Made by a program: the position numbers and the translations under genes. From Octopus sinensis (taxonomy: Eukaryota): a stretch of 64,000 nt of DNA. Of this stretch, positions 4,614-57,840 are shown in pieces. How positions within the stretch are numbered: position 1 is the first letter of the stretch; every line of letters starts with the position of its first letter. The stretch is taken from NCBI RefSeq assembly GCF_006345805.1, contig NC_043005.1, forward strand, positions 21,514,001 through 21,578,000, in the 5' to 3' direction. The notes under the pieces were generated by a model, which saw nothing but the letters and a program-made list of their open reading frames with translations, ran no database searches and was not told the origin of the DNA.

Positions 4614-4784
4614 TTATTACAAAAGTTGATTGTGGACTGCCAAAAGATGTTGTTGGTGCAAAGAAGTCCTACACTAAAACCACCTATAAATCTGAAGTGA
4701 CCTACACCTGTCCAGGAAGACAAAAGTTGAAGTCAAGATGTAAAGATGACAATAAATGGACTCCAGTTACATCCAGTTGCAAAG
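4614..4784 (+). CDS. Exon A1, Sushi/CCP-like domain of a multi-domain extracellular protein
   Basis: ttccag|...aaag|gtaatt; 171 nt, phase 1-1; ITKVDCGLPKDVVGAKKSYTKTTYKSEVTYTCPGRQKLKSRCKDDNKWTPVTSSCK (4 Cys, YTC, W before last Cys). Confidence 0.85.
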
Positions 4785-5380
4785 GTAATTTAAATAGGTT
4801 CGCTTCTGTTGTCTCTGTCTAGGTATTTTTGTTTAATTTTTTTTATTAAATATCTTTGTCAGAAGAATGTCTGTATCCATGACAATTTCTATAGTATTTG
4901 TGGCTGGTTGGAAGGAAAGCAAGAGCTGTCCTCAGACCAGATAACTTTCCAAATCTATGCAAATGAATAGACTTGCATAAGCTATCCAAGGTTGAGGTAA
5001 TGGTATTAATTTGAGTGAAGAATTAAGTTTACCAACCAAGAACATCAAGTGAGGAAGTGTGTTCTCTCCAGCAGGCTTCAGCATAGTTTCCATCCATCAA
5101 ACTTCATTCACAATTCTTAGTCATGAAACAGATTGGTAACATCAACAATGATTATTATTATTTATGCTGGTGATGGATTGAGAAAATCATCAGAACATCA
5201 GACAAAATGTGTTGTGGTATTAGTTCTGGCTCTTTTCCAGGGCCAATAAAATAAAATACCAGTCAAGTGTAAGGCCCAATTTAATCAATCACTTCCTACC
5301 TCAAATTTTTGTCCTTTTTTCTATGTTAGAAATTTTTGTTTTTGGTGTTTACATTTATCTCAATCTTATTTTAATTCCAG

Positions 5381-5620
5381 TTTCTAAAATCCATTTTGTG
5401 AAAGTAAAAGGTGCAGTTCTTGATATACCTGGAAAAATTTTGGAGAGTAATAAAAGTCTAACAGCAGATGTTTGCGCAGAAAGATGTTTGTCTAACAAAA
5501 ATTGTTTATCCTTTGAAATAACTGAAGAAACTGGAAAATGTTACTTATCAAAGGAAAGTGCAACTTCCTCCAAGAAAATAAAAGGAGCCAAAAGCAGAGA
5601 TTACTACCAACGAATAAATT
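5381..5620 (+). CDS. Exon B1, PAN/Apple-like domain
   Basis: ttccag|...aatt|gtaatt; 240 nt, phase 1-1; C-x3-C-x5-C-x-SF-x8-C-YL and DYYQR (CAERCLSNKNCLSFEITEETGKCYLS). Confidence 0.87.
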
Positions 5621-6169
5621 GTAATTATTCTTTGTGTTTTTCTTTTCCACTTATTTTGAAATTTGTAATTCCATTTCTACTTTGTGATACAGTTTTCTCT
5701 AATAGAATATCTACTTTTAAGTGGGGATAAATATTATCTCTTGATATTAATACTGCCTCTGTCACCAATATGTATTTTTCAACAAGCTAACTGGCTAATC
5801 ATGACATTAGCACCTGTTCTCACACTGTGATTCTGTATATTGCTGTAGCAGTCAAGTGTCCAACATTGACAAGACCAAAAAAGCTTGAAATGATCTAGTG
5901 ATCTCAGTGCTGGATATAGCAAGGATTTATCTCCCCACTAGCGATATAAACAAGAGTGCATTTTGCACCAAAAAGCCAATATGACTGTCTCTCATGGTAA
6001 CTGCTTCAGTAGACATTACTTTAGACTTTAAGTCAGATATTACACAAAGAATACCCCATGAGTAACTTAAGAAGTAGATCAGAAGACTTCATGGGAATTT
6101 CCACTTCTACTTCCAAGCTATATAATATTAAATTTTTTAGCAAGTATTACTGAAAAAATCTCCAATTTA

Positions 6170-6580
6170 TCCACAAATCTTTTATCATTTAGTTGTTGCA
6201 ATCATTTGATTGTGTCCATGTTGCTGCAACACCTTGAAGGGTTTTAGTTGAACAAATCAGCTCTAGGATTTATGTTTTAAAGCCAAGTACTAATTCTATC
6301 AGTCTCTTTTGCCAAACTACTAAGTTACAGGGTTGCAAATACACCACAAGCAGTTGTCAAGTGGTGGTGGGAGATGAACACACTCACACACACACATACA
6401 CACCTATATACAACAGGCTTCTTTCAGTTTCCGTTCTACCAAATTCACTCACAAAGCTTTGGTCAGCCAGGGGCTACAGTAGAAGACAATTGCCCATGCT
6501 TCCATGCAGTGGGACTGAACCTGCAACCATGTGGTTGAGAAGCAAGCTTGTTACCACACAGGCATGCTTGTGCTTACACA
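6170..6580 (-). mobile_element. tRNA-headed SINE (decayed)
   Basis: Minus strand begins with a tRNA-like head (ctgtgtggtaacaagcttgcttctcaaccacatggttgcaggttcagtcccactgc), then body and a (TG)n-type tract. A related 3' part lies near 34370-34580. Confidence 0.7.
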
Positions 6581-7699
6581 TATTTTTGATAGCATCTTTT
6601 ACAGTACAACAAGGTGTTATTTTGGATTGGCTTTAGAGAGAATATAGTATAAACAGAGCAACTTCCATCTCCACACCAAAACAGAATTAGGGAGGGATCA
6701 AATTTATTCTGTCTTCAGTTCAACCTAAATGTCTCAATGAACATGACCAGGAACTTTTTATCCTGTATTAGACACCATTTCTCAGAATGTGCATAGTGTT
6801 AAAGTTTGTAACTCTTCCAGCATTTCCACAACAGGAAATGCATACACGTATCCAGCTTTTATTCATGATGCCTAGTTATAACTGTCAAAATCCATCAAGC
6901 CCTCTGCTGAAAGAATTCTACCTTTCTATGTTAGTGGTATATAGAACAACCTTCACTCCAACTGATGGCTTCACAGTGAGACTTACTATCAGTAACTTCA
7001 AGAAAAGTTTCATTTAACTTATTTATTCTTTTAAGTTAATGTACAGGGGAAAGTTCACCTCTATTATAGTTTTATTTGGAGTGTCCAAGAACAGGAAAAT
7101 GATCTACCTAGCATAAGCACAAGCTTACTCACCTAATTATAAACAATGTTCTGTGTTCAAATATTATGTAATTATATAGAAATACCATGTAATCAGAATT
7201 TGAAAGAAAATATTAGAAAGCCATCTAATTCAGTATTTTTTATACAGACAATTTGTTATCAAAAGCACAATCGGTCCATGAGAATATGTTTTTGCATAGT
7301 CACCCATCTCAAAATTCATGTGCATTCTATTTTATCATAAGATGTACTTGGAAGCTCACCTAATTGTTTAGGTTGTACATAAATTATATGTACATTCCTC
7401 TTCTGCTAGTGTGCTTTTCTATAAGATTAAAGGAATTTTAACAACACTTGACACACTGGCTAACCACCTGCTGATCAGCACTTAGACAATACTAAATTAA
7501 TCCATTAGAAAAAGATATGCAAATGATACACAACTTAAACTTTGAAAGAAGTTTTCAAATGAGCCTGAAGATGTACTAAAACTCACATGAATTCCAAGTT
7601 GTAATTATGTGGATCAATTATCTGTTTATAATAAATTGTCCTTTTAAATTAAATTATGCACCAGATGCTATAATAATGTTTAATGTGTGTGTGAGATTC

Positions 7700-10600
7700 A
7701 TCATCATCATCATCATCATCGTTTAACGTCCGCTTTCCATGCTAGCATGGGTTGGACGGTTCAACTGGGGTCTGGGAAGCCTGAAGGCTGCACCAGGCCA
7801 GTCAGATCTGGCAGTGTTTCTACAGCTGGATGCCCTTCCTAACGCCAACCAATCCGAGAGTGTAGTGGGTGATTTTATGTGCTACCGACACAGGTGCCAG
7901 ACGAAGCTGGTGAACGGCCACGCTCGGATGGTGTTTTTTTATGTGCCACCGACACAGGTGCCAGACGAGGCTGGCGAATGACCACGATCGGATGGTGTTT
8001 GTTATGTGCCCACAGCACGGAGGCCAGTCGATGCGGTACTGGCTACGGCCACGTTCGGATGGTTGTCTTATGTGCCACAAAGATACAAATTCCATTGATG
8101 TTCATCTATTTTGATTTGGTTTGATTTTGGTTTGATTTTCACTTGCCTCAACAGGTCTTCACAAGTGTCACAAGAAGGAAGGTATGCACAGGTGGACTGA
8201 CTATGTCCCAGGTAGGGGCCACTGGTTATGGCCTCACTAGTTTTGCCGGGTCTTCTCACGCACAGCATACTTCCATAGGTCTCAGTCTCTAGTCATTTCC
8301 TTGGTGAGACCTAAAGTTCGAAGGTCATGTTTCACCACCTCATCTCAGGTTTTCCTGGGTCTACCTCTTCCACAGGTTCCCTCAACTGCTAGGGTGTAGC
8401 ACTTTTGCACACAACTATCTTCAGCCATTCTCATCACATGACCATACCAGCGCAAACGTCTCTCTTGCACACCACAACTGATGCTTCTTAGGTTCAACAT
8501 TTCTCTCAAGGTACTTACACTCTGTCGATTATGAACACTGACATTACACTGGCTTCATTTCTTGTGAGCTTACGCATATCCTCAGCAGTCACGGCCCATG
8601 TTTCACTACCATGTAGCATGGCTGTATGTACACATGCATCATACAGTCTGCCTTTTACTCTGAGCGAGAGGCCTTTTGTCACCAGTAGGGGTAAGAGCTC
8701 TCTAAACTTTGCCCAGGCTATTCTTACTCTAGCCGTTACACTTTCAGCACACCCACCCCTGCTACTGACTTGGTCACCTAGGTAGTGGAAGCTATCAACT
8801 ACTTCTAGTTTGTCTCCCTGGAACGTGGTAGAAGTTGGTCTCTGCACATTTCCAGTGTTTATTGCTCCTGAGCATCTGCCACAGACAAAAACTATTTTCC
8901 TAGTTAGCCTTCCTTTGACATTGCTGCACCTCTTATGTGTCCATAGCTTACACTTGGTGCACCTTATAGAGTTTCTACCTACACCTTTTTTACAGATCGA
9001 GCAGGGCCATCTACCTGAAGTCGTTTGTGATTGGTCCACCTTCCTACATATTAGGACTTTGGTTTTGGCTAGGTTGATTCTAAGGCCCTTCGATTCTAAT
9101 CCTTGTTTCCACACCTGAAACTTCTCCTCCAGTTCTGATAGTGACTCAGCAATTAGAGCAAGGTCATCAGCATAGAGGAGCTCCCAGGGGCATCCTGTCT
9201 TGAATTCCTCCGTTATTGTCTGAAGGACTATGATAAATAGGAGGGGACTGAGGACTGAACCTTGGTGGACCCCAACCTCTACCCGGAATTCTTCACTGTA
9301 CTCGTTGCCAACCCTCACCTTACTAGCAGCGTCTCTGTACATGGCTCGCACAGCTCTCACTAACCATTCATCTATCCCTAGTTTCCTCATTGACCACCAG
9401 ATAAGAGATCGGGGGACCCTGTCAAAGGCTTTCTCCATGTCAACAAAAGCCAGGTACAGGGGCTTATCTTTGGCTAGGTATTTCTCCTGCAGCTGTCTTA
9501 CCAGGAATATAGCATCAGTAGTACTTTTCCCTGGCATGAACCCAAACTGCATCTCATCTAAGCTAACTCTCTCTCTAATTAATTGGGCTATAACCCTCTC
9601 CGTAACCTTCATTACCTGATCCAGCAGCTTGATGCCCCTGTAGTTATTTGTATCTAGGGCATCACCTTTACCTTTGTAGCAGTTGACTATTATGTTGCTA
9701 CACCAGTCATTGGGTATGACTCCTTCGTGTATCACCTGGTTAACTATATGGGTGACTATGCTATAGCCGACACTACCAGATATTTTGAGCATCTCTGCAG
9801 TAATTCCTGATGGGCCTGGGGCTTTCCCTGTTTTCATGCTTGTAATTGCCTTAACTACTAAGGAACTGTTAACTCGGATTGCTGGTCCCTCTGTTGGGTC
9901 GACATTTGGCAGACTCTCTTTATCCCATTCATTTTCCTCATTCAGCAACCTTTCATAGTGGCGTCTCCAAGCCTCTCTCTTTGCATCCTCATTTAGCGCA
10001 AGTGAACCGTCATCCTTGCGAACACATTTCTCTCCTACCACGTCACGATTCTCTCTCACACACTGTCTTGCAACACAAAATACCTCAAGTCTTTCATCCT
10101 CATGGCGCAGGACATTGGCAAACTTTTTCTTATCTGCTTCCCCTCTGGCTAGATAGACCTGTCTCCTAGCTTCTCTTCTAGCAGTCTGATACACTTCCCT
10201 GCTACCACCGTTCTTCCAGGCCTTCCAAGCCTGTTTCTTTTGTCTAATAGCCCTGTCAACAATATTGTTCCACCACCACGTTATTTTGGGTCTTAAGGGG
10301 ACTTTGCACCAGCCACAGATCTGGTCAGTGGCTTTCAGCAGGTTGTCCCTCAGAAGCGTCCAGTTGTCTTCTACCCCATGTGTAGCTATACCCCCTTCCA
10401 TTTCGTCAAAGGCATCAAGTAACATATCTCTAAATCTCTGTCCATTCACAGGGTCTTTAAGCTTCCAGACCCTTCTTCTCCATGTTGGTCGTCTTCTAGT
10501 TGCCCTCTTAGTCCTGATCCTAAAGTCACTAACTACCAGTCTATGTTGTGGGGTGCATTCTTCGCCTGGGAAGGTTTTGGCATTTATAAGCAGCCATCTT

Positions 10601-11023
10601 TCCCTTTTTCTGGCAAGGATGTAGTCGATTTGGCTAGTATGCCGGCCCAATCGGTAGGTGACCAGGTGGCTTGTCGGTTTCCTGAAGTTAGTGTTGCAAA
10701 CCATAAGACTATTTGCATCGCAGAACTCCAGCAGCCTAGTTCCCTCCTCGTTGCGGGAACCATAACCATAGCCTCCATGTACGCCATGGAAGCCACCAGC
10801 ATGTCGTCCAACATGCCCATTGAAATCACCAGCCACAAAGAGAAGGTCCCTGTCGTTCATCAATGAGGTGGTCTACAGTAGGGTGTCATAGAAACTGTCT
10901 TTCTGTCCATCGGGTAGCCCTGGCTGAGGGGCATAGGCCGATATAATGGTTGCTAATCTATGATGAAGCACTATTCTAATCTTAAGTATTCTGTCACTTA
11001 CTCTGATTACCTCAATTACTTTA
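7700..11023 (-). mobile_element. RTE-clade LINE, 5'-truncated within the endonuclease, relatively young
   Basis: Continuous EN(partial)-RT homology. One TAG near 10873 and one short deletion/frameshift near 8550. Full 3' UTR and (TGA)n tail at about 7700-7722. Removing it restores homology with the intron upstream of exon C3. Confidence 0.95.
8515..10863 (-). pseudogene. RTE ORF remnant, 782 aa (EN C-terminus, RT, C4HC3 finger)
   Basis: AGDFNGHVG, SQIDYIL (APE endonuclease); KAPGPSG, YRGIKL, FVDMEKAFD, GVHQGSVLSP, YADD (RT). Confidence 0.93.
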
Positions 11024-11061
11024 TGAAATGTAATTCTTGTTTTCTTTCTTTTTTTATCTAG

Positions 11062-11295
11062 CTGATAAAGATATTTTAAAATTTGAAAAAACTTCCATAC
11101 CAAGAGAAGATACATTTAAACGGCTGGAAAATGTGACCGTAAAGGAGTGTGACCATGCTTGTCATCAAACTCCAGGATGTAACTCTTATGAGTATAATGA
11201 GAAAGCTAAGTTCTGTGATCAAAGTGATGCGACTCACCTGACTCATGACCTTCAACCAGATCAAAAGGATTGGGATACTTATGTCATTAACCCAG
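11062..11295 (+). CDS. Exon C1, PAN/Apple-like domain (type 2)
   Basis: tatctag|...cccag|gtcagt; 234 nt, phase 1-1; CDHACHQTPGCNSYEYNEKAKFCDQS...WDTY. Confidence 0.87.
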
Positions 11296-12560: not shown

Positions 12561-12611
<51 letters not shown>

Positions 12612-12613
12612 CC

Positions 12614-13949: not shown

Positions 13950-16150
13950 TAGAGCAAAGCAACAGGCCTTGAAGGACTGAAAGAGTGGGAGTAGCAGAAA
14001 ACTGCATCAGATAACCAGAAGGGAAGCTAGGAGACAGGTATATCTAGCCAAGGAAGAAGCAGAAAAAAAGAAGTTTGCCTATGTTCAGTGATGTGAAGAC
14101 CAAAGACTTGAAGTGTTTCAGATTGTAAGACAGTGTATGAGAGAAAATTGTGATGTCATAGGAGAGAAATGTGTCTGCATGGATGATGGTGCACTTGCAT
14201 TTAATGATTCTGCAAAGAAAGAGACTTGGAAATGCCATTATAAAAAGGTGCTAGATGTGGAGAATGAATGGGAGAAGGAAAGTGTGCCTAATATTGACCC
14301 AACTGAGGGACCAACTATCTGGAGAGGGTCATATCTCAATTAATTAGGGAGAGAATTAGAGTAGATGGGATACAGTTCAGATTTGTGCCAGGCAGGAGCA
14401 CAACTGATGTTCTATTCCTAGTTAGGCAACAGCAGGAGAAATATCTAGCCAAAAATAAACCCCTATACCTGGCTTTCATTGATATGGAGAAAGCCTTTGA
14501 CAGAGACCCCCCACTCTATTATCTGGTGATCAGTCAGGAAGCTAGGGATAGATGAGTAGTTGGTGAGAGCTGGACAGGCTATGTACAGGGATGCTGTCAG
14601 TAAGGTGAAGGTTAAGCAAGGAATTCAGAGTTAAGTAGGGGTTTACCAAGGATCAATTCTCAACCCACTCTTGTTCATCATAGGTCCCCTGGCAATAACA
14701 GGAATTCAAGACAGGCTGCCCCTCGGAGCTCTTGTATTTTGATGACCTTGCTCTTATACCTGAATCACTACCAGAAGTAGACAAGAAATTTCAGACATGG
14801 AGATATGGTATGGAATCAAAGGGCCTTAGAGTTAACCTAACAAAAACTAAAGTCTTAGTAAGTATAGGAGGGCAGACAAATCACAAATGCCTTCAGGTAG
14901 ATGGTCCTGCTCGATCTGTAGGGAAGTTATTTGTAGAAACTCCATAAGATGTCCTCAGTGCAAGCTATGGACACATAAGAGGTGCAGCAATCTCAGAGGA
15001 AAGTTGACTAGGAGTATAGGTTTTGTGTGGAGAAGGTGCATGGGTACAATAAACACCAAAAATGTACAGAAAATAGACTCCATCACCTGCCAGGTTGGTA
15101 AGTTAGAGGTAGTAGATAGCTTCTGTTATATAGGTGACCAAGTTAGTAGCAGAAGGGAATGCTCTGAGAGCATAGCTGCAAGAATAAGAATAGGGTGGGC
15201 AAAGTTCAGAGAGCTCCTACTTCTGCTGGCAACAAAGAGCCTCTCCCTCAGAGTGAAAGGCAGACTGTATAATGCTTGTGTGCAAGCAGCTATGCTATAC
15301 ACCAGTGAAACGTGAGCTGTGACAGCCAAGGGCATGTATAGACTTGAAAGGAATGAAGCTAATATACTTTGCTGGATGTGTAATGTCAATGTTCATGTTC
15401 AAATGTAAGCACCTTGAGAGAAAAGTTTGGCATAAGAGGCATCAGATATGGTGTGCAAGAGATAGATGACTGTGCTGGTATGGTCAAGTGGTGTGTATAG
15501 ACAAGGACAGTTGCGTGAAGAAGTGCTAATCTCTAACTGTGGAGGGAACTTGTGGTAGAGGTAGACCCAGGAAGATATGGAATGAGGTGGTGAAGCATGA
15601 TCTTTGAAATGTGGACTTCACTGAGGCAATGACTTAGTGACCAAGACCTTTGGCGATACAGCATGCTTGATAAGAGCTGTCAAGCTTAGTGATATCATAG
15701 CCATGGATGATGCTGGTGTCACATAACTGGCACCCCTTCTTGTGATACATAAAAAGTACTTTTTTAGTGTTGGGCTTCATGGAGGCAAGGTGGCCGATGC
15801 TAGTGGCATGTAAAAAGCATGCTTCAAGTATTGGGCCACATGGAGGCAATGACAAATGACCAAGATTTTTGGTATTATGCTGTGCTTGAGAAGAAGACCC
15901 ATCAAACCAAGTGAAATTGTAATTACAGCAGATACTGGTGTCATGCAAATTGCACCCCTGCCAGTGGCATGTAAATGCACATATTACACCCTTGGAGTGG
16001 TTGGTGTTTGGAAGTACATTCAAGCATAGAAATCATGCCAAATAATACTAGAGTCTGGTACAACCTTCCAGCTTGCCAGCCCTGGTAAAACCATCCAACC
16101 CATGCCAACATGGAAAATGGACGTTAAATGACAATGAAGATGAAGATAAC
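13950..16150 (+). mobile_element. RTE-clade LINE, decayed
   Basis: ORFs at 14113, 14732 and 14887 (VRQCMREN, YFDDLALI, CSICREVICRNSIRCPQCKLWTHKRC). Tail catggaaaatggacgttaaatga near 16110-16135. Confidence 0.9.
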
Positions 16151-16443: not shown

Positions 16444-16614
16444 CTTATTCAAGTATTAATTGTGGGCCTCCCAAAGATATTGTTGGTACATCAAAGTCCT
16501 ACAAAACTACTGCCTATAAATCTGAAGTACTCTATACTTGCTCAGATGGAGTACAGCTAAAGTCAATATGTGAAAAAGACAACAAATGGACTCCAGTAGC
16601 GTCTTCTTGTAACG
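16444..16614 (+). CDS. Exon A2, Sushi/CCP-like domain
   Basis: tttcag|...aacg|gtaaca; 171 nt, phase 1-1; YSSINCGPPKDIVGTSKSYKTTAYKSEVLYTCSDGVQLKSICEKDNKWTPVASSCN. Confidence 0.85.
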
Positions 16615-19612: not shown

Positions 19613-19852
19613 ATCCTCAGCTCCATTTTGTGAAAATAAAAGATGCAGCTCTGGATGTACCTGGGAAAACATTGTTGGATAAGGAAGATGTAACAGCAGA
19701 TGAATGTGCAAAAAGATGTCTGTCTGATGAAAGTTGTTTATCATTTGAAATAACCAAAGGAAATGGAAAATGTTACTTATCAGAGAAAACCGCTGCTACC
19801 TCCAAGAAATTAAAGGGAAACAAAGACAGAGATTACTACCAACGATTAAAGC
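19613..19852 (+). CDS. Exon B2, PAN/Apple-like domain
   Basis: ctttag|atcctcag...aagc|gtaatt; 240 nt, phase 1-1; CAKRCLSDESCLSFEITKGNGKCYLS...RDYYQRLK. Confidence 0.87.
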
Positions 19853-24214: not shown

Positions 24215-26932
24215 TCTTTATATATATAAAACTGAGAATGTGTGTCTGTCTGTCTGTCTATCTGTGTGTTTCCCTAAAACTTGAGAACTACACAACCAAT
24301 TTCATTCAAATTTTACACATGCCTTACTTAGGGTCCATGTAGTTTCATGGGCAAAAAAATGTTCAACTTCTTGCCTAGAGCGAGCCCATAGCAATATATC
24401 TTCTCCACTATTTCAGTATTATGTGTTAAAAGTGAAACAAAAACATTTCTCTATTTTATGTCAGATACTTTCACTTTAACAATAAAAATAATAATAACAA
24501 TTGAATTATATGTAGTAAGTAATAATTAAAATCAAACTAAAGTATAATATAATCGTAACATTAAAAAAAAGTAAAAATAGCAATTGGTATAAAATTGCAT
24601 CAATGACTTGAACTTGAATAAGTGGTTTCACATGAATGGGAATAAATTAAAAATAAAATTAGCGTGCAGAAATGGAATAGTCCAGATGGATAATAAAAAA
24701 TTAAATTAAAGAAAAGACTATTGTCTATAAAGTATACAATGTAGAGAAAAAAGAAGATTGAATGGACGTGTTTTTTTTGCGCTCTGTGAAATTCGGTTAA
24801 AAAAGAAAAAAGAACAAAAAGTGAATAGTTGTTGTTGTGAAATTTTGAACGTCGTTGATGCGGTTTCGCGTTTCACTGGTTCTGCGCGTTGCACTTATTC
24901 GGTTCGGGAGGCCGTTTTTCGGTCTGAGGCGACTATGAGCCGCCTCTACCAAACGGATGAGATGGAAGGGAGAAATTTCTCTGAAAATTCGTCGACATCT
25001 GAGGAGGAGTTGGCGGTGGAAAAAATGGAAAGCACCTACGCAGGTATAACGAAGAAGTCAACAGAAAAAGAGATAGACCTGGCTAAGTTGACGGGCTTCC
25101 AGGAGTTCATGAAGGAGGACGAGAACGGAGAGGTCGAGCTGCTGCCTCCAGCAGGGCGCGGAGACTGGTTCCATCGTAGAACCATTAAATATAAAGTATT
25201 TATGAATGGAGGTAGAAAAATGGAAGTGATTAACATGGAAGCAATTGAAGAGGCTCTCAAACAGACAGGAGAAGAAATTGTGTACATGACAAAAGGATTA
25301 GAATATGGAACCATAACGGTACAATTTAAAAGTGAGAAAGCAGCCAGGAATATAGCAGCCAAGGTGGTGAGTACAGAAAAGATTTACTTGTTCCCCTCGT
25401 ATTTGAATAGAAGGACCACCAGAATTAGGGTGGTGGGAATACCTCCACACCTAGAGGGCGAATTAATAACGGCTGCGGTTATCAAAGGAAATGAAGATAA
25501 AGTGGACATCCTCCATGCCATTATGAAATATGAAGGCGTGAGAGGTGCCACACTAGAAATGAACATACAGACGGAGGCGGAAGTTATAGAAAAGCTTACG
25601 GACAGTATAAAAACTGGGAATATTATTATGAGAGTGTGGGTGGAGGGTAGGGCGCCCAGGTGCTACAAGTGTGGCCAGAGGGGTCACATAAGAGCCTACT
25701 GCCCTCCCCCACCAAAGGAAAAAGAAAAGGAAATCGTCGCGGAAGCCCCAAAAGAGGAAGAAACCAAAGAGAACCAAACGGAAAAAGAAACGACAGAAGA
25801 AGAGGAGATGCAACAAGAGTGGGAAGAAGGAAGAAAAAAGAGAAAAAGAAAGAAAAAGAAAAACTGTGCAAAGCCCCAACCCACCCCAACACCACCCGCA
25901 CCCTCTGAATCCCACCCTTCCTCTGCAGACAGTGAACCCACCCGCTCCCCTCCAACAAGAAAACAAAAGAAAAATAATAATACAGACAGACAAGAGTTTG
26001 AAAACGAACCCAGGCCGAACATTTATATCGTGACTGAACAGAAAGAAGTTAAAAGGGTAATGGAGGAGTATGAATGGTATGAAATGGATGGGACCAGATA
26101 TGCAGTGCTGGAAAAGAAGAATATAGATGAGTTTGTGTTGAGGTGTGAGAGGGAGAATTGGGAGGTGAAGGATACAAGAATGAGCGATGAATTCGTGGAA
26201 AGTATGGAGGACAGTTTCGGAGTAAGAATGGATATGGAGGGTCTTCATATTGCGAATGAACATTCAGGTGACAGTGAAAACAAAAGGACAGGTAAGTGAT
26301 GCTGGCGGAGGGGGCCATTAGCATCGCTTTCATATTATCATTTTCATTTTAATATTCATTTGCTCATAAATTTAATCATATTGTTCTATGTCCCCCATGT
26401 TTTGTTATGTCCGCCATTCTTCGTAGCCCCTGGTGGGTAATAAAGAAATTACATGGAAGAAAGCACCTTCGAAAAGTGTCTTGCTGCAACTATGAAAGGT
26501 ATCTAATCAGAGGCGGTAAATTCGCCACAATAGAAGCAAGGTTCGAGTCAACGGAGCGTGCAAGGGAGTACTCAACTTGAACTTGCAAAGTGGAAATATT
26601 TTACTTTTACCTTTATATCTGGGACGTCCTACGTCCCGGAAAAAAATTTTAAATGCCCCCCAGCCCCCACCCAGAAGTTGAGGTCGGCTGGATTGTAGCC
26701 ACACTTCTATACAGATCCAATTGATCGAAATTGCAAGACACGGGCCTACAATTCCAGTCTGTTATATATTTTGAGTATTGTTATCACTAGCGATATCAAG
26801 ATATAACTTTGTATTTTGTATTTTATGTGTAGATGTATATATATAGATGTACATGTAATATGTACACATATATATACACATATATACATGCACTAGCACT
26901 ATGACCCGGCAACGATGGGTCTTTAATGCTAG
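24215..26932 (+). mobile_element. Non-autonomous Helitron (composite, carries an internal ORF1 element)
   Basis: A|TC 5' end, 3' hairpin gaccc-ggcaacgat-gggtc (26903-26921) and CTAG|T, no TSD. Excision gives cttcaa/tatttaatatgtgtgtga, homologous to the sequence upstream of exons C1 and C3. Confidence 0.85.
24935..26299 (+). CDS. Intact gag-like ORF1 protein (L1/Tx1-type): putative RRM-like region, one CCHC knuckle, Glu/Lys/Pro-rich tail, 454 aa
   Basis: ATG at 24935 in frame with the 24758-26299 ORF. CYKCGQRGHIRAYC at 25661-25702, basic run RKKRKRKKKK. No stops or frameshifts; CpG-rich leader. Confidence 0.85.
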   Translation: MSRLYQTDEMEGRNFSENSSTSEEELAVEKMESTYAGITKKSTEKEIDLAKLTGFQEFMKEDENGEVELLPPAGRGDWFHRRTIKYKVFMNGGRKMEVINMEAIEEALKQTGEEIVYMTKGLEYGTITVQFKSEKAARNIAAKVVSTEKIYLFPSYLNRRTTRIRVVGIPPHLEGELITAAVIKGNEDKVDILHAIMKYEGVRGATLEMNIQTEAEVIEKLTDSIKTGNIIMRVWVEGRAPRCYKCGQRGHIRAYCPPPPKEKEKEIVAEAPKEEETKENQTEKETTEEEEMQQEWEEGRKKRKRKKKKNCAKPQPTPTPPAPSESHPSSADSEPTRSPPTRKQKKNNNTDRQEFENEPRPNIYIVTEQKEVKRVMEEYEWYEMDGTRYAVLEKKNIDEFVLRCERENWEVKDTRMSDEFVESMEDSFGVRMDMEGLHIANEHSGDSENKRTGK

Positions 26933-27030: not shown

Positions 27031-27264
27031 TTGATGACAAGCCTTTCATGATGAAAAAAGTTAGCATACCAAAGAAGGCTACAATAAAAGAGCTTCAGGG
27101 TATGAAATTAAAGGAGTGTGACGAAGCTTGCAGTCAATATGCAAGATGTAACTCTTATCAGTACAATAAGAAAGAGAAGATATGTGATCTGAGTCATGCG
27201 ACTGAGTTGAACAATGAACTTATGCCTAATGATGGAAGCTGGGATCTATACATTATTAATCCAG
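27031..27264 (+). CDS. Exon C2, PAN/Apple-like domain (type 2)
   Basis: ttccag|...ccag|gtcagt; 234 nt, phase 1-1; CDEACSQYARCNSYQYNKKEKICDLS...WDLYIINP. Confidence 0.87.
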
Positions 27265-35417: not shown

Positions 35418-35585
35418 TTGTCACAAAAGTTGATTGTGGAGCACCAAAAGTTGTTGTTGGTGCATCTAAATCCTACAATACTACTAACTACAAATCTGAA
35501 GTGATCTATACTTGTCAAAAAGGAGAAATATTAAAGGCAACATGTAAAGAGAACAGGAAATGGTTTCCAGTAGTGTCTTGTAAAG
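35418..35585 (+). CDS. Exon A3, Sushi/CCP-like domain (one-codon deletion)
   Basis: attacag|...aaag|gtaatg; 168 nt, phase 1-1; VTKVDCGAPKVVVGASKSYNTTNYKSEVIYTCQKGEILKATCKENRKWFPVVSCK. Confidence 0.85.
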
Positions 35586-37829
35586 GTAATGTAAATAGGG
35601 TCTTTCTTTTTGACTCTGCCTCAGTAATTTTGTTTTAGCTTTGAGTTCCAAGTTTATGTCAGAGGAAGTCTGACTTTGTCCATGAAAATTTGCATTGTGT
35701 TTGTAATTGGTAGGAGAGTGAGAGCTAGTTATCCTCAGATCAGAGATGTTTCTAAATGCTTGCAACACAGTGTACTTCATTAAAGATATTTAAGAGCCAG
35801 GTAATGGTAATAATTTGGTTGATGGGTTAAGTCTTCACCAAAGAACAGAAAGTGAGGAAGTGCATTCTCTCCTTCAGGTTTCTGCTAGTCTCTATCCACC
35901 ACTAAATTTCATCCACAATGCATAGTTGTGAATCAGAATTTTAGCAACACAGCCACAAGTCTACAGAATATGATATTCTTGTTAAGTACACTTATTACTT
36001 CCATGAATATACCTCGCCTTAGTTTTGGAGTTTTTCTCTTAATTTTTAACTTAACCTTTCTCGTCCAGTCTTTGTTTCATCCTCTGAAACACTGTACAAT
36101 ACAATGCACTGAATTTTTATTTACTAGAATTCAGCAATCATCCAAAATTTCTGATACTCTAATGGTCCATTCCACCATCCTAAATTGTAATGAAACAAAT
36201 AATAATTATGGTTTCTGATGGAAAAAGAGCCAGTACTTTTGTATAGAAAATTGTTAGTCAGTATCCTTACATCCAATACTGGACTACTGTTTTGTGTTGT
36301 TGACTCACCCCTTACAAGAATGAAATGTAAAGTTAACATGGGCTGGATTTCAACTGCAAACAATAAAATCCTGAATACATCCCATAAAAAATCACTTCCA
36401 AAGCTCTAATTTGTATACATGTATATATTTAATATAAAAATGAGAACGATGATGTGATTTTCTAGAGTGTTGAAGAATCTTTGTCTAAAACTAATTGAAG
36501 AAACCCACTGTCAAAGACCACCATGAACTCCAAGAAGTGCCCTCTCCATTTAATATTCTTTGACCAACAGGTTTTAAGCAGTGTTGGACCCATCCACCCT
36601 CAGGTCACTTTCAATAATTTTCCTTTAGGAGAATATCTTCCTATCCATCCTCATCAACTTTACAAGTGAAACTTTAAAAATACAGATTAGGGATTATCTA
36701 AAGAAGAAAGTCCCTATTGTCAGACCCTTGAATCACATCCATCACACAACTGCTTTTGCTATAGCTAGCAGACAGAGGAAAATGAACTTTTCTACTTGGT
36801 TAAAAGAGGATGTGAGGCAGTCATAATAATGGACTTGAATAACAGCTGGATCTGTCTCACACATGATACCTGCTATTTGACATAAATTTACAAGTCAATA
36901 ATGCCTGGACATTGAACAAGTGCATATAAAATTAATTTGTTCCACTGTGAACATCTTGAACAGCACTGTCTGTTAGAATTTCTATGACTACATTTTATTT
37001 TGGTTTCATAGACCTATTTGATAACACTACCAAGGGCTACAGGAAGTTTCCCATAGTATTCCATGGCCAAGAAGTTCTTTGAAACAAACTTCCCGCCTCA
37101 TTCTCATCAAACCCCAGAATATTGCTGAGAATATCAATGATCTTCCCCTCAATTAATCTTCTATAGATTACATAGCCCAATCAAATTTGATTTGGTGTAC
37201 TTACGATTACATTAGGTAATCTGACTTTCCCATTTTTAAAATTGTGTATGTGATTGAGAGATATTTTGATATTTATTGCATTAATATACAGGCACATTGA
37301 CACAGTTGCTCTTACTGGACGTGGACCACAAGGTTCCATAGAATTTCATGACATAACTGTTTCTCTCACAACTAGCTTATAAGAAAATATAAATACCACC
37401 ACATTGTAATCAATTACGTATTCATTATTTAAGTACATGGCCAAAAATATTTAGAAAAAAGAAATTAGTTTATGTGAAATTCATGTCATTCTGAAGGTCA
37501 CTGTCTATATAAAGTGATCTGAATCAAATCCAGAATGTATTATCAAAAATATTGGTAACATCAGCAATAATTATAAATATTTGTATTGACAATGGATTGA
37601 GAGGATCATCAGAACATCAGACGAAATATGTTGTGGTATTTGTTCTGGCTCTTTGACATTTGAGTTCAACTATATTTTTCCAGTGCCAATAAAATAAAAT
37701 ATCTGTCAAATATAGGAGCCAATTTAATCAATCATCTCCTACCTCAAATTTTTGTTCATTTTGCTTCATTAGAAATTATGGATGTTGTTTTTGTTGTTTA
37801 CATTTATCTCAATCTTACTTTAATTCTAG

Positions 37830-38069
37830 TTACTGAGAGAAAATTTTTGAAAGTAAAAAATGCAATGCTGGATGTACCTGGAAAAACTTTGTGGAGAAAG
37901 AAAAATGTAACAGCAGATGCCTGTGCAGAAAAATGTTCATCTGACACAAATTGTTTATCATTTGAGATAACTAAAGTAAGTGGAAAATGTTACTTATCGA
38001 AAGCAACTGCAGCTTCCAACAAGAAAATAAAAACAGCCAAGAACAGAGATTACTACCAACGAATAGATC
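37830..38069 (+). CDS. Exon B3, PAN/Apple-like domain
   Basis: ttctag|...gatc|gtaatt; 240 nt, phase 1-1; CAEKCSSDTNCLSFEITKVSGKCYLS...RDYYQRID. Confidence 0.87.
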
Positions 38070-41222: not shown

Positions 41223-41456
41223 CCGATGATGATCTTTTTACTTTTAAAAGAACTGCCATACCAAAGCATAATACATTTGGTCGGATTAAAGGAGTAAGTT
41301 TAAAGGAGTGTGACCGTGCTTGCCTTCAAATTCCAGGATGTAAATCTTATGAGTATCATGAAAAATATAAATTCTGTAATCCATCTAATGAGACTCACCT
41401 GACTTATGACCTTAAACCCAACAAAAATGGATGGGATATACATATCATGAACCCAG
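41223..41456 (+). CDS. Exon C3, PAN/Apple-like domain (type 2)
   Basis: tatctag|...cccag|gtcagt; 234 nt, phase 1-1; CDRACLQIPGCKSYEYHEKYKFCNPS...WDIHIMNP. Confidence 0.87.
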
Positions 41457-46909: not shown

Positions 46910-47080
46910 TTTACAGCAAAATAAAATGTGGACGACCAAGAAAAATTGCTGGTTTATTGATGTCCTACAATTCCACCACTTATAGATCTGAAGTGACCTA
47001 CACATGTCCAGACGGAGAAGAACTGAAGTCGAAATGTGATAAGGACAAAAAATGGACTTCAGTAGACTCTGTTTGTGAAG
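46910..47080 (+). CDS. Exon A4, Sushi/CCP-like domain
   Basis: ttccag|...gaag|gtaagg; 171 nt, phase 1-1; YSKIKCGRPRKIAGLLMSYNSTTYRSEVTYTCPDGEELKSKCDKDKKWTSVDSVCE. Confidence 0.85.
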
Positions 47081-47675
47081 GTAAGGCAAATAGCTACCTT
47101 CTTGCTGTTTCTGTCTATGTAATTTTGTTTCACTTTTGTGCTAAATGTTTTAGTCAGAAGAGGACTGGCTGACTCTATAGCAACTTCTACATTGATTGTG
47201 GATGGTGTAAGGGAGAAAGAAAGCTATCCTCAGATCAGGGAACTCCTCAAACATAGTGGACATCATTTATTCTACCCAAGTGCCAGGTATTAGATTGGAT
47301 GATGGATTAAGTCCACCAGCCAAATAGGATAAGTGTGGAAATTTCTCCCTCCAGCAAGCTTCCACATAACTTTCATCTACCAAATTTCATCCTTAGTTGT
47401 AGAGCAAATTTTTAACCACAAAACCAAGACTACACCCAGGACCCCAAAGTTGTGAAGTAACCTTCTTAAATTCACAGTCATACCTAAGGGATTCTATGTG
47501 TATCTTCTTTTAATTTCTTTTTCACCAGTACCATGCACCATCATCCAAAACTCTGTTCAGTATAATGTTCTGGGTCCTTCATCACCAGAATTCAACAATC
47601 CTCTGAAATAGTCTTCTAATGCACCACTGATTCTTTCAATCCACCATTCTTAATCATACTTTCTACCATAGACAC

Positions 47676-49809: not shown

Positions 49810-49980
49810 TTTTTAAACACATTGACTGTGGAAATCCAAAAGAGATTGCCGGTGCAGCAAAGTCCTATGAAACCACCACCTATAAATCTGAAGTGACCTA
49901 TACTTGCCCAAAAGGAGAAAAACTAAAGTCAACATGTGAAAAGGACAAGAAATGGACTCCAATTGTGGAAATCTGTAAAG
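49810..49980 (+). CDS. Exon A5, Sushi/CCP-like domain
   Basis: tttcag|...aaag|gtaaca; 171 nt, phase 1-1; FKHIDCGNPKEIAGAAKSYETTTYKSEVTYTCPKGEKLKSTCEKDKKWTPIVEICK. Confidence 0.85.
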
Positions 49981-51230
49981 GTAACATAAATGGCTTATTT
50001 CTTGTTCTCTCTGCCTATGTAATTTTGTTTTAATTTTTTGTTAAATGCATTTGTCAGAGGAAGACTGACTGAATACATGACAAGTTCCTCACTGGTTATG
50101 GCTGTTGGTGGGAGAGAACTAGTTATCCTCAGACCAGATATCTCACAAATGCTTACAACAAAGTGGACATGGTCAATTCCACTGAAGGCCAAGGTAATGG
50201 TATTAAACTGGATGATGGATTAAGTCCACCAACCAAGAGCTGGAAGTATGGACAGTTTTTTTCTCTCCTACCCTCTTCAATATAGTTCACATCCACCAAA
50301 TTCTTCTTGAAAGCTTAGTTGTGAAGTGAATTTTTAATCATGCAGAAATAACTCTACCTTGTACCTTATGTTTAACAAGTAAACTTTACTACCTCCATAG
50401 CTATACTACAGCGCATCTTGATAGATTTTCTCTTAACTTCTAGCAAGAAATTTCTCTACCCTACTTTGTGCTACCATCCAGAACTCTGTAAATATAATGT
50501 CGGAGTTTTTCTTTACTAAAATATAGCAATCCCCTAATACAGACTTCTGATGCCCCTGTTATCTTTCATTCAACTACCTATAATTATAATACTACTAATA
50601 ACAATAATGGTTTCTGATTTAGGCACAAAGCAGTAGTTTTTAATGGATTGCATTTAGTCAAAACCTTGAACACTGCTAACTGCCTGGCACATTGTTTTAT
50701 TCATTCCCACAAGATTGAAAGCTCTTTGTTTAATTTGAACTGATGGACAAAAGAGCCTGATTACTTATTGTGATGCATTTCTTGTAATACTCTAATCAGT
50801 ATCCATCATCATCATCATCTTCATCATAATCAACAACATTATCATTATTAATATCATCATCTTTTAGCACCTGTTTTCTATGCTAGTAAGCATTCGACAG
50901 TTTGATAATATCCAGTGAACTGTAGAGCTGCATTAAGCCCAATCTTATCTTTGACATGGTTTAAGTGGCTGAATACCATTCCTCAGACTAACCACTTTAG
51001 AGGGTGTATTGGGTCCCTTTCCTTGTTACTAGTAAGGTCACCAATAACTTGTAACACAAAATAAAGGGAAAGCAAAAAGACCCCTCAGCTAGGTGAGAGT
51101 GTATTTGAGAGAGTGAGAGGTAGATTTGTGCCATGTATTGAAGGCTAAGGTATGAAAGAGTGACAAGCATAGGTGTCTTACTATAGAGGAGATACACTGC
51201 TACTCCATATTACGTGATGATGGGTAAGAG

Positions 51231-53000: not shown

Positions 53001-53366
53001 ATTCTCATCCACTCTAGCCATTTTTGCCACTCTCACATAATTTCCCTTGAAGATAGTACCTTCCGCTTCATCTTTAAATTCTTTACAAGTGAAATTTACA
53101 AATGCAGATGAGAGATTGATCAAAGAATAAAAACACTGTTGTCTGACCTTTCAGCCTCATCCACCACACAAACACAGAAATACTACCTTCCAGATAAAAA
53201 AAAGTGTGAAGCAATTATTCCACACATAACAACAGTTTTTTGACATAAATTCACAATGCAGCAGTGCTTGGGCACTGAATGAGTGCATACAAAATGATTT
53301 TGTTTTACTGCATACATCTGAAAGGGGTCAGTTTCCCAATGTTATTCCCCGAGGAAAAAGTTTTCC

Positions 53367-53663
53367 TGTTGTATAGTGAAACTGTATACTCTTTCCAATA
53401 AAAAGTGGTAGGAGACTACCATTATAAATAGACTAGCAGCCTGTTGTCATGAGAGGGTCGATAGCCAGAGAATTGAGTGTTGAAAGTTCTAGTTGGTGTT
53501 TGTGGAGCTGTCATTGATAGTAAGACAGAAGTTACTGTTCTGGAAGAAAGAGATGTAATGGTATCCGTTGACTAGTAACTATTGTGGCTACTAGCATGAA
53601 ACAGCAACTACAGTACAACAGCAGTCACACATCTCACCAGTGGGAGGAACCCACTTTACAACA
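53367..53663 (+). repeat. 5' LTR
   Basis: TGTTGTATAG...TTTACAACA. Confidence 0.92.
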
Positions 53664-56094
53664 GTGGGGACAAGGAAAAACAAATTTACACAGAGTGAAA
53701 AAAAAAAGGCATTCATACGGAGAGTTCAAACTAATTCACATGGAAATTAAACAAATCTTTGAAAAAAATGTCAGGATTGGATGGACGAAATGAAAATGTG
53801 TCTAGTTTTAAGAACACTAGTGACAGCAGAGCATGAGAAGTATAGTAACTTCATATTGCCAAAAAAAGTATCCGACATAAATTTCACCAATGCAGTTCAC
53901 ATTTTGTGTACTATGTTTAGTGAAAAGAACTCATTGATTAATACTAGATGGAAATGTTTAAACATAGAAAAGAGCAAAGACAAAGACTTCACTGCTTACA
54001 CTGGTAGAGTCAACAAAGAATATAAGAGATTTAGGCTGGATATGCTTACTCCAGATTCTTTCAAGTGCACAAAGATTGACGGATAAAAGAGATGCAGAAA
54101 TCCGAATGAAAATTCTAGCAAAACTAGAAATGAATTGGGATTTAACATGCAGAAACTGTCAGAAGAATGTGACATGATATTAAAATTAAGACATGACATA
54201 GAAGAAATTTAATGGAAAAAGTGTTTTCACACAAGTGTAAAAACGTCAGAAGACAAAGTGTTGCAGGAAAAACTGAAAAATATCAGGATGTAGACCCACG
54301 TATAGCATGTGGTGGGATGCATCTGAAAAAAGATTGTCCATATATAAAAGCAAAGTGTTTTTGCTGTTGGTTTACAGGACATATAGAATCACACTGCAAA
54401 CCTAGAATGATAGGAAAATAGAATAAAACAACAAAAAAATAATAGTTTGTCACCAGGAAATGTTGAGATTACAACAAACAGAAAATTCATGAATGTGAGA
54501 ATTGAAACCACTAGTGTCAGAATGCAATTAGACATGGGAAGTGACTTGACAATCATAAATGAGAAAACATGGCTAAACCAAAATTATGTAGTTCAAACAA
54601 AATAGCGTATGGTGTTACTGGAAGAAAATTATATTTCACAGGAAAACACGTTTGTAATATAATGTTCAAAGGTCAGACCAAAAAATGAATGCTTGTGTTG
54701 AAAAAAATCCATGAATTTATTTGGCACCAAATGTATGGAGGAATTTAATTTATGAGATTCATCCAGAAATGCTTTGTGCAATCAAACAAGGTCGATGAAC
54801 TGAAACAAAAAAAGTGATGTGGAACATCATGCATGAACTACCAGAAACTTTGGAAGAAATAAAAAGAAAACTGTGGTCAACAAAAGGAAATAAAGAAAGG
54901 TCTGATGCAAAGAACTGCCAAGATGTGAGCGTGTAATCTATATGTGATCAGAGGATGGTCATACCACAGACATTACAGAAGAGAATGCTAAAAGAGTTCC
55001 ATGTGGGACACCCCGGCATCTCTAGAATGAAAGCACTGATGCAAAGTTTTGTATACTGGCCAAGCATAGACAAGGAAGTTGAAAACCTGGTAAAATGCTG
55101 CAGAGGATGTGCACTGGCAGCAAAACGACCTACTATAAAATGCGAACCTTGGCTGGAAGTGAAAATACCATGTTCTTGATTGCATATCGATTTTGCAGAC
55201 CCTGTAAAGGGATACTATAACTTAGTATTAGTGGTCAACTACACAAAATGGCCTGAGCTTGTGAGGTATAAATGACCAACCTCATATACAATAATAAACT
55301 TCTTACATGAGTTGTTTGTAAGATTTGGTGTACCAGTTACTTTTGGTGTACAGAGTATTTGGTGTACTCTGTCTCTGATAGCAGAACAGAGTTTGTATCC
55401 TGTGAGTTCAAAAGATTCTACAAGATGTTCACATTAGAACATAAAACTATAGCACTGTATCACCCTAGATAGAATGGAAGGGCCGAACAGTTTGTGAACA
55501 CTTTTAAGAGGGCTTTAAAGAGAGCTAATAAGGAAGCCATGGACGAGGTCATGATCCAACAATTCTTCAAGGTATACAGGGTAACTCTGAACCCAAATGT
55601 ATCAGAAGGAAGTTCACCAGCAGAATTAATATTTGCCAGAAAGGTGAAGTCAGTATTCAATAAACTGTTACCAGTGAAGAAAAAGATACATACTAGTAAA
55701 GACATGTTAAAATTCTTTAGAATTGGTGATAATGTATATGTAAGAATGTACAAAAATGGCAAGAAATATTGGGAAAAAGGAGAAATTGTAACATACATAG
55801 GGAGAATGATGCATGGTGTTAGAAGCAGAAATGGAATGGAAAGGAGACAGAAATCGGCTTAAGGAAAGAATCATAGAAAAGGAAACAACAAAAGTAGAAA
55901 TATGGATGGACTGGCTATATGAAACTTCAGGCTCCAACACTGTTACAAGAAGTCGAAGCCACATATACAAAAAAAGAAAGAACACTGAATTCCTAAAAGT
56001 AGATCCTAAGAAGAAAAGATATTGAGTATATAAAAAAAAGAGGAGGTGGGGGTGAGAAAAATTGATTGCTAAATATAATTATTAAAAGGGGAGA

Positions 56095-56396
56095 TGTTGT
56101 ATAGTGAAATTGTATACTCCTCACAGTAAAAAGTGGTAGGAGTCTGCCATTATAAATAGACCAGTAGCCAGTCATCGAGAGAGGGTCAAAGAGTTGAGAG
56201 TCAACAGTTCTAGTCGGTGTCTTGTGAAGTGACCAGCGATAGTAAGACAGAAGAAGTTAGTGTATTGCTATTCCAGTATGCAGAGATACAATGGCATCCA
56301 ATGACTAGTAACTATTGTCACTACTAGCATAAAACAGCGACTATGAAACAATGGCAGTCACATGTCACACCAATGTGAGGAACCCACTTTACAATA
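56095..56396 (+). repeat. 3' LTR
   Basis: TGTTGTATAG...TTTACAATA; 9 mismatches to the 5' LTR in the first 75 nt. Confidence 0.92.
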
Positions 56397-57600
56397 CTTC
56401 CCAAACAAACTTACTAGTTCATTGTCATCAATGACCAAAACAACCCTGAGAATGTCATTGCTTTATCCCACCATTAGCTCTCAATAGATTGCTATAGTGG
56501 AACTTCCACCTATCCAATTGCCTAGATTATGTTTGATCCTGCATACTGTATCTTTAGAAATCCTTTGGATGAAATTACATAATATGAAATACTCTTTCTA
56601 AAGATGGCTGGGAATAATTGACAGAAGTTTTGTCAATATTTCTAACATATTGGGCATCTACACAGGGATTCCACAGTAAGTGTTGAACTTAATATTACAA
56701 GCTAACAGATCTGACACAGCTTATTCTCTGATACATGACACTTCAGGTGGTCTTAGTGATGGTGGTAAACAATAGTTGGTTACTGTTTATATATTTATTA
56801 CAATATCAAGCATTCATATTGACTTGCAATTGCCCATGTTGAACATGAACCACAGGAATCTCACAAACATAGAAAGGAGAGTGGCCACAAAATTTCATGA
56901 CATAACTGTTTCTGTCAAGATATATAAATACTATCTCATTGTACTCAATTCTATATTCCTTGTTTAGGCACATGGCCAAATATATTTAGAGAAAACAATG
57001 AGATTGTGTGACTTCATGGGCACTAACTGTCTTTATAAAATGAAGTATGTTGCGCTGAGGATCATTGACTTGCATCACTTAATTCCTATATATACTAAAA
57101 GAATACTCATGGCAAAATATTTAGAGTCAATTCTTGCATGGAAAACAAATAGCAAAGTGACTACTCATTAAACCAAAATATTATAATTAATTAATGATTC
57201 ACCCATAGAGAGGAAGAAGAAAATTATTATGTTAACATTTTAATTTGGTTGTGAAATTCAGAAGAGAAAGCCTTGTGAAAGTAATCACTTTTTTTTAATC
57301 TCATTAAAAGTAAAAGCACTAGATGGTGATGGATGAGAAATTATTTTTGCTATTCCAAGCAAAACTTTGCTATATAGTAAAGTGGTGAGTTACATCCTTT
57401 TACATTCTATATAGTAAAGTGGTGAGTTACATCCTTTTACATCCTTTTACATTATCATGAAATGTGATACTGGTCCGATGTAGAAGCCAATTTCATTGAT
57501 CAATTCCTACCTAAGTTTTGACTTATTTTCTATGATGGTAAATTATTATAGTTGTTGATGATGTTATTGTTTATTGGTTTAAATTTTTCTTTAACTCTAG

Positions 57601-57840
57601 ATCCTCAGATCCATTTTGTGAAAGTAAAAGGTGCTGCTCTGGATGTACCAGGGAAGATATTGTGGAAGAAGAAAAATGTAACAACAAAAGCCTGTGCAGA
57701 AAAATGTTTGTCAGACAAAAAATGTCTATCATTTGAAATAAATAAAGAAATGGGAAAGTGTTTCTTATCAAAGCAAGCTGCAAGTTCCTCCAAGAATATG
57801 AAAACAGACTCAAGAAAAGATTACTACCAACGAGTAGAAT
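57601..57840 (+). CDS. Exon B4, PAN/Apple-like domain
   Basis: ctctag|atcctcag...gaat|gtaatt; 240 nt, phase 1-1; CAEKCLSDKKCLSFEINKEMGKCFLS...KDYYQRVE. Confidence 0.87.

Follow-up and report, generated by a model that had tools for sequence, protein, structure and literature searches.

The closest described relatives of the locus reported here are the coleoid GON proteins, which are 450-500 amino acids long and consist of a signal peptide, two PAN domains, one or two Sushi domains and a GON domain (PF08685). Their UniProt names point to the work of Ruder et al. 2013 (J Mol Evol 76:192), in which they were reportedly described from transcriptomes of the coleoid posterior salivary (venom) gland. 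The GON domain is otherwise known from ADAMTS-9 and ADAMTS-20, and mosaic proteins built from one phase 1-1 exon per domain are textbook knowledge, as are the Sushi and PAN modules themselves. We analysed a stretch of 64,000 nucleotides from Octopus sinensis (NC_043005.1, positions 21,514,001 to 21,578,000 of the forward strand; the whole of this stretch is called the window), in which an earlier note, made from the sequence, had proposed a hidden, giant modular gene with a repeating Sushi-PAN-PAN triplet. We find that the 12 exons of the window are real, selectively maintained coding exons of O. sinensis chromosome CM016867.1, and that they belong to a same-strand Sushi-PAN-PAN array, sampled stretches of which lie within an interval of ~0.57 Mb in O. 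sinensis and a similar one in Octopus bimaculoides.

A tblastn search of the window with four peptides derived from its open reading frames (ORFs) gave 12 strong matches, all on the + strand, and otherwise only noise; exon borders were set by reading the flanks. The exons belong to three classes, A (171 or 168 nucleotides), B (240 nucleotides) and C (234 nucleotides), and follow one another in the order ABC ABC ABC A AB (A2 to B4 as placed by tblastn and flank reading):

4614-4784, + strand: exon A1, Sushi/CCP (complement control protein), 171 nucleotides, phase 1-1, with AG/GT borders and an open frame
5381-5620, + strand: exon B1, PAN, 240 nucleotides, PAN_1 at 45.5 bits against a cut-off of 21.4
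11062-11295, + strand: exon C1, PAN, 234 nucleotides, PAN_1 at 31.7 bits against a cut-off of 21.4
16444-16614, + strand: exon A2, Sushi/CCP
19613-19852, + strand: exon B2, PAN
27031-27264, + strand: exon C2, PAN
35418-35585, + strand: exon A3, Sushi/CCP, 168 nucleotides (one codon fewer)
37830-38069, + strand: exon B3, PAN
41223-41456, + strand: exon C3, PAN
46910-47080, + strand: exon A4, first Sushi of the double-Sushi (AAB) step
49810-49980, + strand: exon A5, second Sushi of the AAB step
57601-57840, + strand: exon B4, PAN, the last exon in the window

A pyrimidine tract and AG stand before each of the 12 exons, and GTAA or GTCAGT directly after it. All of them start and end in phase 1, and spliced together they give 2514 nucleotides, or 838 codons, with no stop. 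The one codon missing from A3, in frame, is the sole difference in length between copies of the same class. All 48 cysteines (four per exon) and the Sushi tryptophan are retained even though the copies differ at 20-35% of bases, and chance is therefore excluded as the origin of these exons. The number and order of the exons, their AG/GT borders, their phase and the open 838 codons, as the earlier note had given them, were all confirmed by tblastn, the flanks and splicing. Its layout of one phase 1-1 exon per domain holds for all 12, and the cephalopod that it suspected is O. sinensis, A1 being identical to part of the O. sinensis protein XP_036361601.1. Eight family proteins used as queries revealed no additional A, B or C exon in the window, and family proteins together with N-terminal and GON queries revealed neither a GON exon nor a signal-peptide exon there. 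After B4 the family-protein search found no C exon within 57841-64000, and the next C exon is expected outside the window.

The predicted product of the window carries a net charge of +45 over 837 residues; it contains 48 cysteines, is 15% lysine and lacks a hydrophobic span. Its N-glycosylation sequons had also been pointed out in the earlier note. All of those named (NKS, NVT, NTT, NET and NST) are there, but the total of 7 is no more than chance, since shuffled sequence of equal composition yields as many (5.9 +/- 2.2), and we rejected sequon enrichment as a sign of glycosylation.

The calls of Sushi, PAN and PAN domains were upheld by Pfam on the spliced product, in which PAN_1 is matched in 7 stretches (E-value 5.7e-57) and Sushi in 4 (E-value 1e-07, 32.7 bits against a cut-off of 20.7). 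When single exons were used, B1 and C1 exceeded the PAN_1 cut-off, and A1 reached 17.6 bits for Sushi, under the cut-off of 20.7. A profile made from 38 A domains matches the CCP modules of CR2, CR1 and DAF (E-value 5.7e-14), with the cysteines and the tryptophan aligned, and in these domains of 55-56 residues C6, C32, C42, W48 and C55 are invariant, the tryptophan lying between the third and fourth cysteines. By these profiles class A is a short Sushi/CCP module (PF00084); an AlphaFold model of A1 alone has a predicted local distance difference test score (pLDDT) of 86 and three to four strands. In an alignment of 18 ABC units, each unit has 12 cysteines that never vary, and each of its modules contributes four.

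With four cysteines each, classes B and C belong to the PAN modules (PF00024) of the plasminogen/HGF kind. An AlphaFold model of an O. bimaculoides ABC unit that is 64% identical to the first unit of the window has a pLDDT of 84, and Foldseek searches with its PAN pair returned the apple domains of FXI and prekallikrein, TgMIC4, SML-2 and the HGF N domain; the pair fits plasminogen PAp with a root-mean-square deviation of 2.0 Å across 78 columns. This unit thus shows the PAN fold, in which a helix packs against an antiparallel sheet. The apple subtype has six cysteines, with a third disulfide that joins the first and the last. Since B and C have exactly four invariant cysteines each, not six, we rejected the strict apple subtype and regard both as core PAN modules.

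The copies diverge rapidly around this fixed framework. In pairwise comparisons of the window copies the synonymous distance (dS) is 0.3-0.9 and the ratio of the non-synonymous distance to it (dN/dS) is 0.33-0.97. Among 103 distinct exons the corresponding ratio of proportions of differing sites (pN/pS) is 0.59 for A, 0.82 for B and 0.68 for C, and by a heuristic count that is not tree-corrected the non-synonymous rate exceeds the synonymous mean at 20 of 79 sites in class B. Over the window and six further loci described below, pS is lowest in the B exons (0.27, against 0.39 in A and 0.45 in C), yet their pN/pS is the highest; either gene conversion homogenising the B exons or constrained silent sites combined with a diversifying surface could give this result. 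The exons are only slightly more alike between copies (identity ~0.68-0.81) than is the flanking intron (~0.55-0.74). We also asked whether conservation is higher in the stretch that directly follows the A exons than in the exons themselves, and rejected this on pairwise identity (0.64-0.74 against 0.68-0.81). Not one stop, frameshift, lost splice site or lost cysteine occurs in the window exons. The pattern reads as a fixed cysteine scaffold with a fast-changing surface.

An exhaustive profile search ranked first the 2643-amino-acid XP_036361601.1 (P0014), "uncharacterized protein LOC118764742" of O. sinensis, whose gene ranges over 152.7 kb of the 109.7-Mb chromosome CM016867.1. Exon A1 is the last of its 36 domains (residues 2582-2637), and its final 62 residues are those of A1, 100% identical, followed by EECLYP. 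The domains of this protein run BCABCAABC, then ABCABCABCAABC twice, and then A1. For nine of the 12 window exons the best match in XP_036361601.1 lies exactly 13 or 26 domains upstream, and the window is therefore the next copy, with 12 of 13 exons, of a higher-order repeat ABC ABC ABC AABC. B4, for example, is 89-90% identical to residues 2423-2501, and A5 is 80% identical to domain 32, both 13 domains upstream; A1 is 77% identical to its upstream best match. The AAB step marks the end of the 13-exon unit; it is present in all homologues and recurs in all species compared. Around paralogous exons the flanking intron can be aligned at ~70% identity over 0.3-0.8 kb, and so the duplicated unit was genomic DNA, not cDNA.

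The word hidden in the earlier note is largely right, because in the protein collections searched none of the other 11 window exons has a match above 90% identity, and the 10 kb downstream of the LOC118764742 model are without a gene call. A1, however, is annotated, as part of XP_036361601.1.

To place the window within its surroundings we mapped the exon profiles on the DNA of six loci, four from O. bimaculoides (L001-L004) and two from O. sinensis (L005 and L006). The sampled DNA makes up about one third of each ~0.57-Mb interval, and order and single strand are seen within the sampled stretches. An overlap of the window with these loci was ruled out, the similarity being only paralogous (65-83%). 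In O. bimaculoides four models lie on one chromosome at 88.25-88.83 Mb, next to PAN/Sushi models of 1865 and 4083 amino acids, and A, B and C exons occur in regular order on one strand in the models, in the gaps between the models and in the unannotated 10-kb flanks. Ordered, same-strand A, B and C exons were seen again in the O. sinensis loci at 20.76 and 21.27 Mb. Intact ordered exons that carry no gene call are found at 3253-9986 and 35974-44047 of L002, at 241-8630 of L001 and in the flanks of L004 and L005. Nearly all RefSeq models begin within a domain exon and have no signal peptide, and the presence of intact, ordered exons between and beside them means that the published models of the locus are fragments; some 11 of every 12 exons can stay unannotated.

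Taking the window and the six loci together, 108 of 111 detected exons have AG/GT borders, an uninterrupted frame and a length divisible by three, and every one of these 108 is a symmetric phase 1-1 exon. GON exons, four in number, were seen only at the end of L001 in O. bimaculoides, where an unrelated gene comes next. The earlier view of the window as the middle of a long, repetitive, secretory-type protein is supported, and the locus, with roughly a hundred such exons or more, is far larger than had been seen. Exon spacing is ~4.5-5.5 kb in O. sinensis (window, L005 and L006) against ~2 kb in O. bimaculoides (L001-L004), and the wider spacing appears to be made up by intronic transposon insertions.

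The closest proteins in the databases are uncharacterised models of O. bimaculoides, Octopus vulgaris and O. sinensis, together with GON-Abd-1 (R4G2C1) of Abdopus aculeatus, which is 45% identical to the window product (E-value 6e-62). With GON-Abd-1 as the query, GON-SepT-1 and GON-SepT-2 of Sepioteuthis australis and a homologue from Acanthosepion pharaonis were added. The domain maps of the short GON proteins read BCA, BCAA and BCA. Among 1.84 billion representative proteins, the complete A-B-C triplet was found only in Octopus proteins, and the other matches were Sushi runs alone or PAN pairs alone. RefSeq models with the same cassette are LOC118764742 and LOC118764741 in O. sinensis, and LOC128248837, LOC128248838, LOC128248840, LOC106869402 and LOC106869390 in O. 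bimaculoides; the final 12 domains of LOC128248837 align in the same order with the exons of the window (61% identity, 99% coverage). The suggestion that the architecture is undescribed is not supported, as RefSeq models of the triplet exist and the named coleoid GON proteins have a homologous cassette. A literature search on GON and PAN proteins in octopus and on venom-gland genomics found no publication on this family.

A tandem PAN pair like B-C is also present on the C-terminal side of Octopus ADAMTS-like metalloproteases of the reprolysin-TSP1 kind (P0135 and P0163), and at the N-terminus of octopus WSC-domain and zonadhesin-like proteins (P0098 and P0096). The pair is thus a shuffled module in cephalopods. 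That ADAMTS-like proteins have it may be relevant to how the GON family arose, because it is from ADAMTS-9 and ADAMTS-20 that the GON domain is otherwise known.

We consider it probable, though well short of assured, that the window exons extend the LOC118764742 unit and that the whole encodes a giant secreted multivalent binding protein. The starting point would be a small secreted protein with a signal peptide, PAN, PAN, Sushi and GON, amplified in octopods by repeated unequal crossing-over of segments made of an exon and adjoining intron; since all exons are phase 1-1, an extra copy leaves the frame intact. The window exons would belong to the same transcription unit as LOC118764742, and the product would be a very long, secreted, disulfide-bonded and strongly basic chain, much like beads on a string. 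By analogy with other PAN proteins, each PAN pair may bind glycans or proteins, with the short Sushi as a possible spacer or second site. Tandem copies would provide high avidity, and surface divergence on an invariant cysteine scaffold would widen the range of bound partners, among which the net charge of +45 and the 15% lysine would favour polyanionic ones such as glycosaminoglycans and mucins. The C-terminal GON domain might serve in secretion and export or in anchoring. Of the roles offered in the earlier note, recognition or adhesion may suit a Sushi-PAN-PAN product of this kind, and nothing that we found speaks for an egg-coat protein. As to the site of expression, our guess is a secretory gland or epithelium, for example the salivary glands, and a salivary role is suggested only because the short GON homologues come from there.

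Several observations weigh against such a continuous, expressed and secreted chain. The RefSeq model ends straight after A1, in a stop-bearing mini-exon with an AATAAA downstream at about 5247, and the LOC118764742 unit may therefore really end there:

4862-4882, + strand: six-codon terminal mini-exon of the RefSeq model, encoding EECLYP and then a stop, behind an acceptor ttgtcag; the tail of XP_036361601.1 maps here

This mini-exon is a putative alternative to A1-B1 splicing. In the sequence collections searched, no transcript or peptide spans any window junction, and no near-identical protein was found for the full window product or for its second unit. No signal-peptide exon was detected in the six sampled loci, although tblastn would miss short, divergent ones, and continuity between the sampled stretches is an extrapolation because only about one third of each interval was sampled. 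The searched parts of an O. vulgaris salivary-gland proteome supplement hold neither peptides with the family motifs DYYQR or CLSFE nor InterPro entries for GON or Sushi. Finally, Foldseek with the A1 model against the PDB returned nothing better than an E-value of 0.8 and no match to the CCP beta-sandwich fold, so that membership of class A in the Sushi family rests on sequence profiles.

One alternative is that the region is a tandem cluster of separate genes, with the window holding the 3' end of LOC118764742 (A1 and the mini-exon) and then the body of an unannotated paralogue. RefSeq indeed cuts the O. sinensis region into models of 380, 667 and 2643 amino acids, and that of O. bimaculoides into models of 709, 761, 1067, 1133, 1865 and 4083 amino acids, and the spliceable stop mini-exon and AATAAA after A1 are joined by like motifs after A3-A5. 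Yet nearly every one of these models starts within a domain exon and without a signal peptide, intact ordered exons occupy the gaps between them, and the GON end is present in one model only. Moreover, A1 and B1 are just 596 nucleotides apart, with no first-exon-like sequence between them. We hold a cluster of separate genes to be a possible but unlikely explanation. Another alternative is that the exons are a cassette library, from which in-frame subsets are joined into many short or medium isoforms, each with a signal peptide, a few cassettes and GON, in place of one giant protein. The symmetric phase of all 108 intact exons would permit this, the copies are strongly diversified, and the cDNA-derived members in other coleoids hold a single cassette. 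However, the searches gave no transcript with such joining, the RefSeq models join adjacent exons in genomic order, and the short cDNAs may be ordinary small genes of other species, and we judge the library improbable. That alternative joining, between a single signal-peptide exon and a single GON end, would in addition let each cell or gland secrete its own set of Sushi-PAN-PAN proteins seems to us quite improbable; if it were true, it would be a splicing-based repertoire for recognition or prey targeting in an invertebrate, comparable in principle to Dscam.

It could also be argued that the 11 exons lacking annotation are mere leftovers of recent duplications, silent and no longer expressed. 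They are absent from every protein set searched, their identity is barely above that of the flanking introns, and pN/pS is high. On the other hand, we roughly estimate that neutral decay at 20-35% divergence would leave ~15-20 stops in 838 codons, as well as frameshifts, and the window exons show neither. No splice site and none of the 48 cysteines has been lost, and 108 of 111 exons are intact in two species. Silent relics are thus a highly improbable account, and a giant secreted binding protein that extends the LOC118764742 unit is the reading that we retain.

Two candidates for additional support came from the sequence searches, and both were set aside. Logan matches that might have been transcripts are single exons that run on into introns and are thus genomic, and P0140, which might have been a transcript-derived relative, is an unrelated protein in which PAN is joined to part of a transposase. 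The sequence downstream of the A exons has a recurrent feature of its own. A1, A3, A4 and A5 are each followed, ~77 nucleotides past the donor, by a conserved acceptor-like TTTGTCAG (copies in 4785-4930, 35586-35731, 47081-47226 and 49981-50126), after which the in-frame reading meets a stop in 3-7 codons (EECLYP, EEV, EEDWLTL and EED before the stop, respectively). The AG of the motif is gone after A2. The motif may belong to a recurring alternative terminal exon or poison exon, or it may be no more than intron sequence that the copies share.

Between and beside its exons the window contains transposable and other elements, copies of which are up to 95% identical between the window and the O. 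sinensis loci. The B1-C1 intron holds a non-LTR (long terminal repeat) retrotransposon with a 782-amino-acid ORF at 8515-10863 (- strand) that matches RVT_1 (E-value 3e-32) and, weakly, a PHD finger; decayed relatives of this element, with 73-79% identity, lie at 3-1331 (+ strand) and 14321-15653 (+ strand). A 513-amino-acid ORF in the B2-C2 intron (24758-26299, + strand) has no Pfam match, is rich in lysine and glutamate and contains a CX2CX4HX4C zinc knuckle (CYKCGQRGHIRAYC), and is probably a gag-like retroelement protein. The long A5-B4 intron retains the remnant of an LTR retrotransposon in the form of an Integrase_H2C2 fragment (E-value 7e-16) at 54955-55179 (+ strand). In addition, a 351-bp unit is repeated 2.6 times at 3082-3994 (+ strand) with 93% identity among its copies. 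An inverted relative lies 4 kb away, at about 7698-8255, on the far side of exons A1 and B1, and copies at 95% identity are present in O. sinensis locus L005. The unit looks like a young SINE-like (short interspersed element) or satellite element.

When the window is set beside the coleoid GON proteins, the two share a homologous PAN, PAN and Sushi in the same order and the pattern of four cysteines per module; they differ in that the GON proteins have one cassette and both ends, whereas the window lacks both ends and has four cassettes. The RefSeq octopus models share with the window the triplet architecture and the AAB step, and XP_036361601.1 contains A1, but these models are automatic and nameless, nearly all of them begin in the middle of a domain, and they leave out many intact exons, among them all from B1 to B4 in the window. 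What is already known is the cassette's named but little-studied family and a set of fragmentary RefSeq models, while what appears to be new is the amplification in octopods into a structured array spanning roughly half a megabase, and the extent of what annotation has missed. If the array is transcribed as we suppose, octopuses would have one of the largest known mollusc loci for a repetitive secreted protein, one that would have arisen within the octopods from a small protein of the venom gland and that annotation mostly misses. It would also be a candidate for a fast-evolving binding protein of octopus saliva, mucus or immunity.

Among proteins of other lineages, the best structural matches to the PAN pair are Toxoplasma MIC4, Sarcocystis SML-2, and FXI and prekallikrein (Foldseek E-values 3e-05 to 1e-03), and MIC4 is also matched by sequence profile. 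These multi-PAN adhesins and lectins (MIC4, SML-2), like FXI and prekallikrein, bind through tandem PAN modules. Sequence identity in the PAN-fold matches is only 11-23%, however, and they have neither Sushi nor GON; the likeness is one of fold and working principle, not of orthology. SVEP1 has runs of Sushi domains in common with the octopus proteins, two of which (P0003 and P0012) bear the name SVEP1 in RefSeq. Neither shows a VWA, EGF or pentraxin domain in its Pfam list or domain map, and the name is an artefact of similarity.

Parallels for the arrangement itself are the long homologous repeats of CR1, each of seven CCP modules, and the kringle IV-2 repeats of LPA, in both of which blocks of phase 1-1 exons have been amplified by unequal crossing-over. 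As in CR1 and LPA, tandem multi-exon blocks within a gene make up a repeat of repeats, the block in the octopus being 13 exons long. The octopus array differs from both in its domains and its lineage, in its far larger scale and in its more diverged copies (~50-65% amino-acid identity), and offers a clean natural example of how symmetric phase-1 exons allow domains to be amplified into a repeat of repeats.

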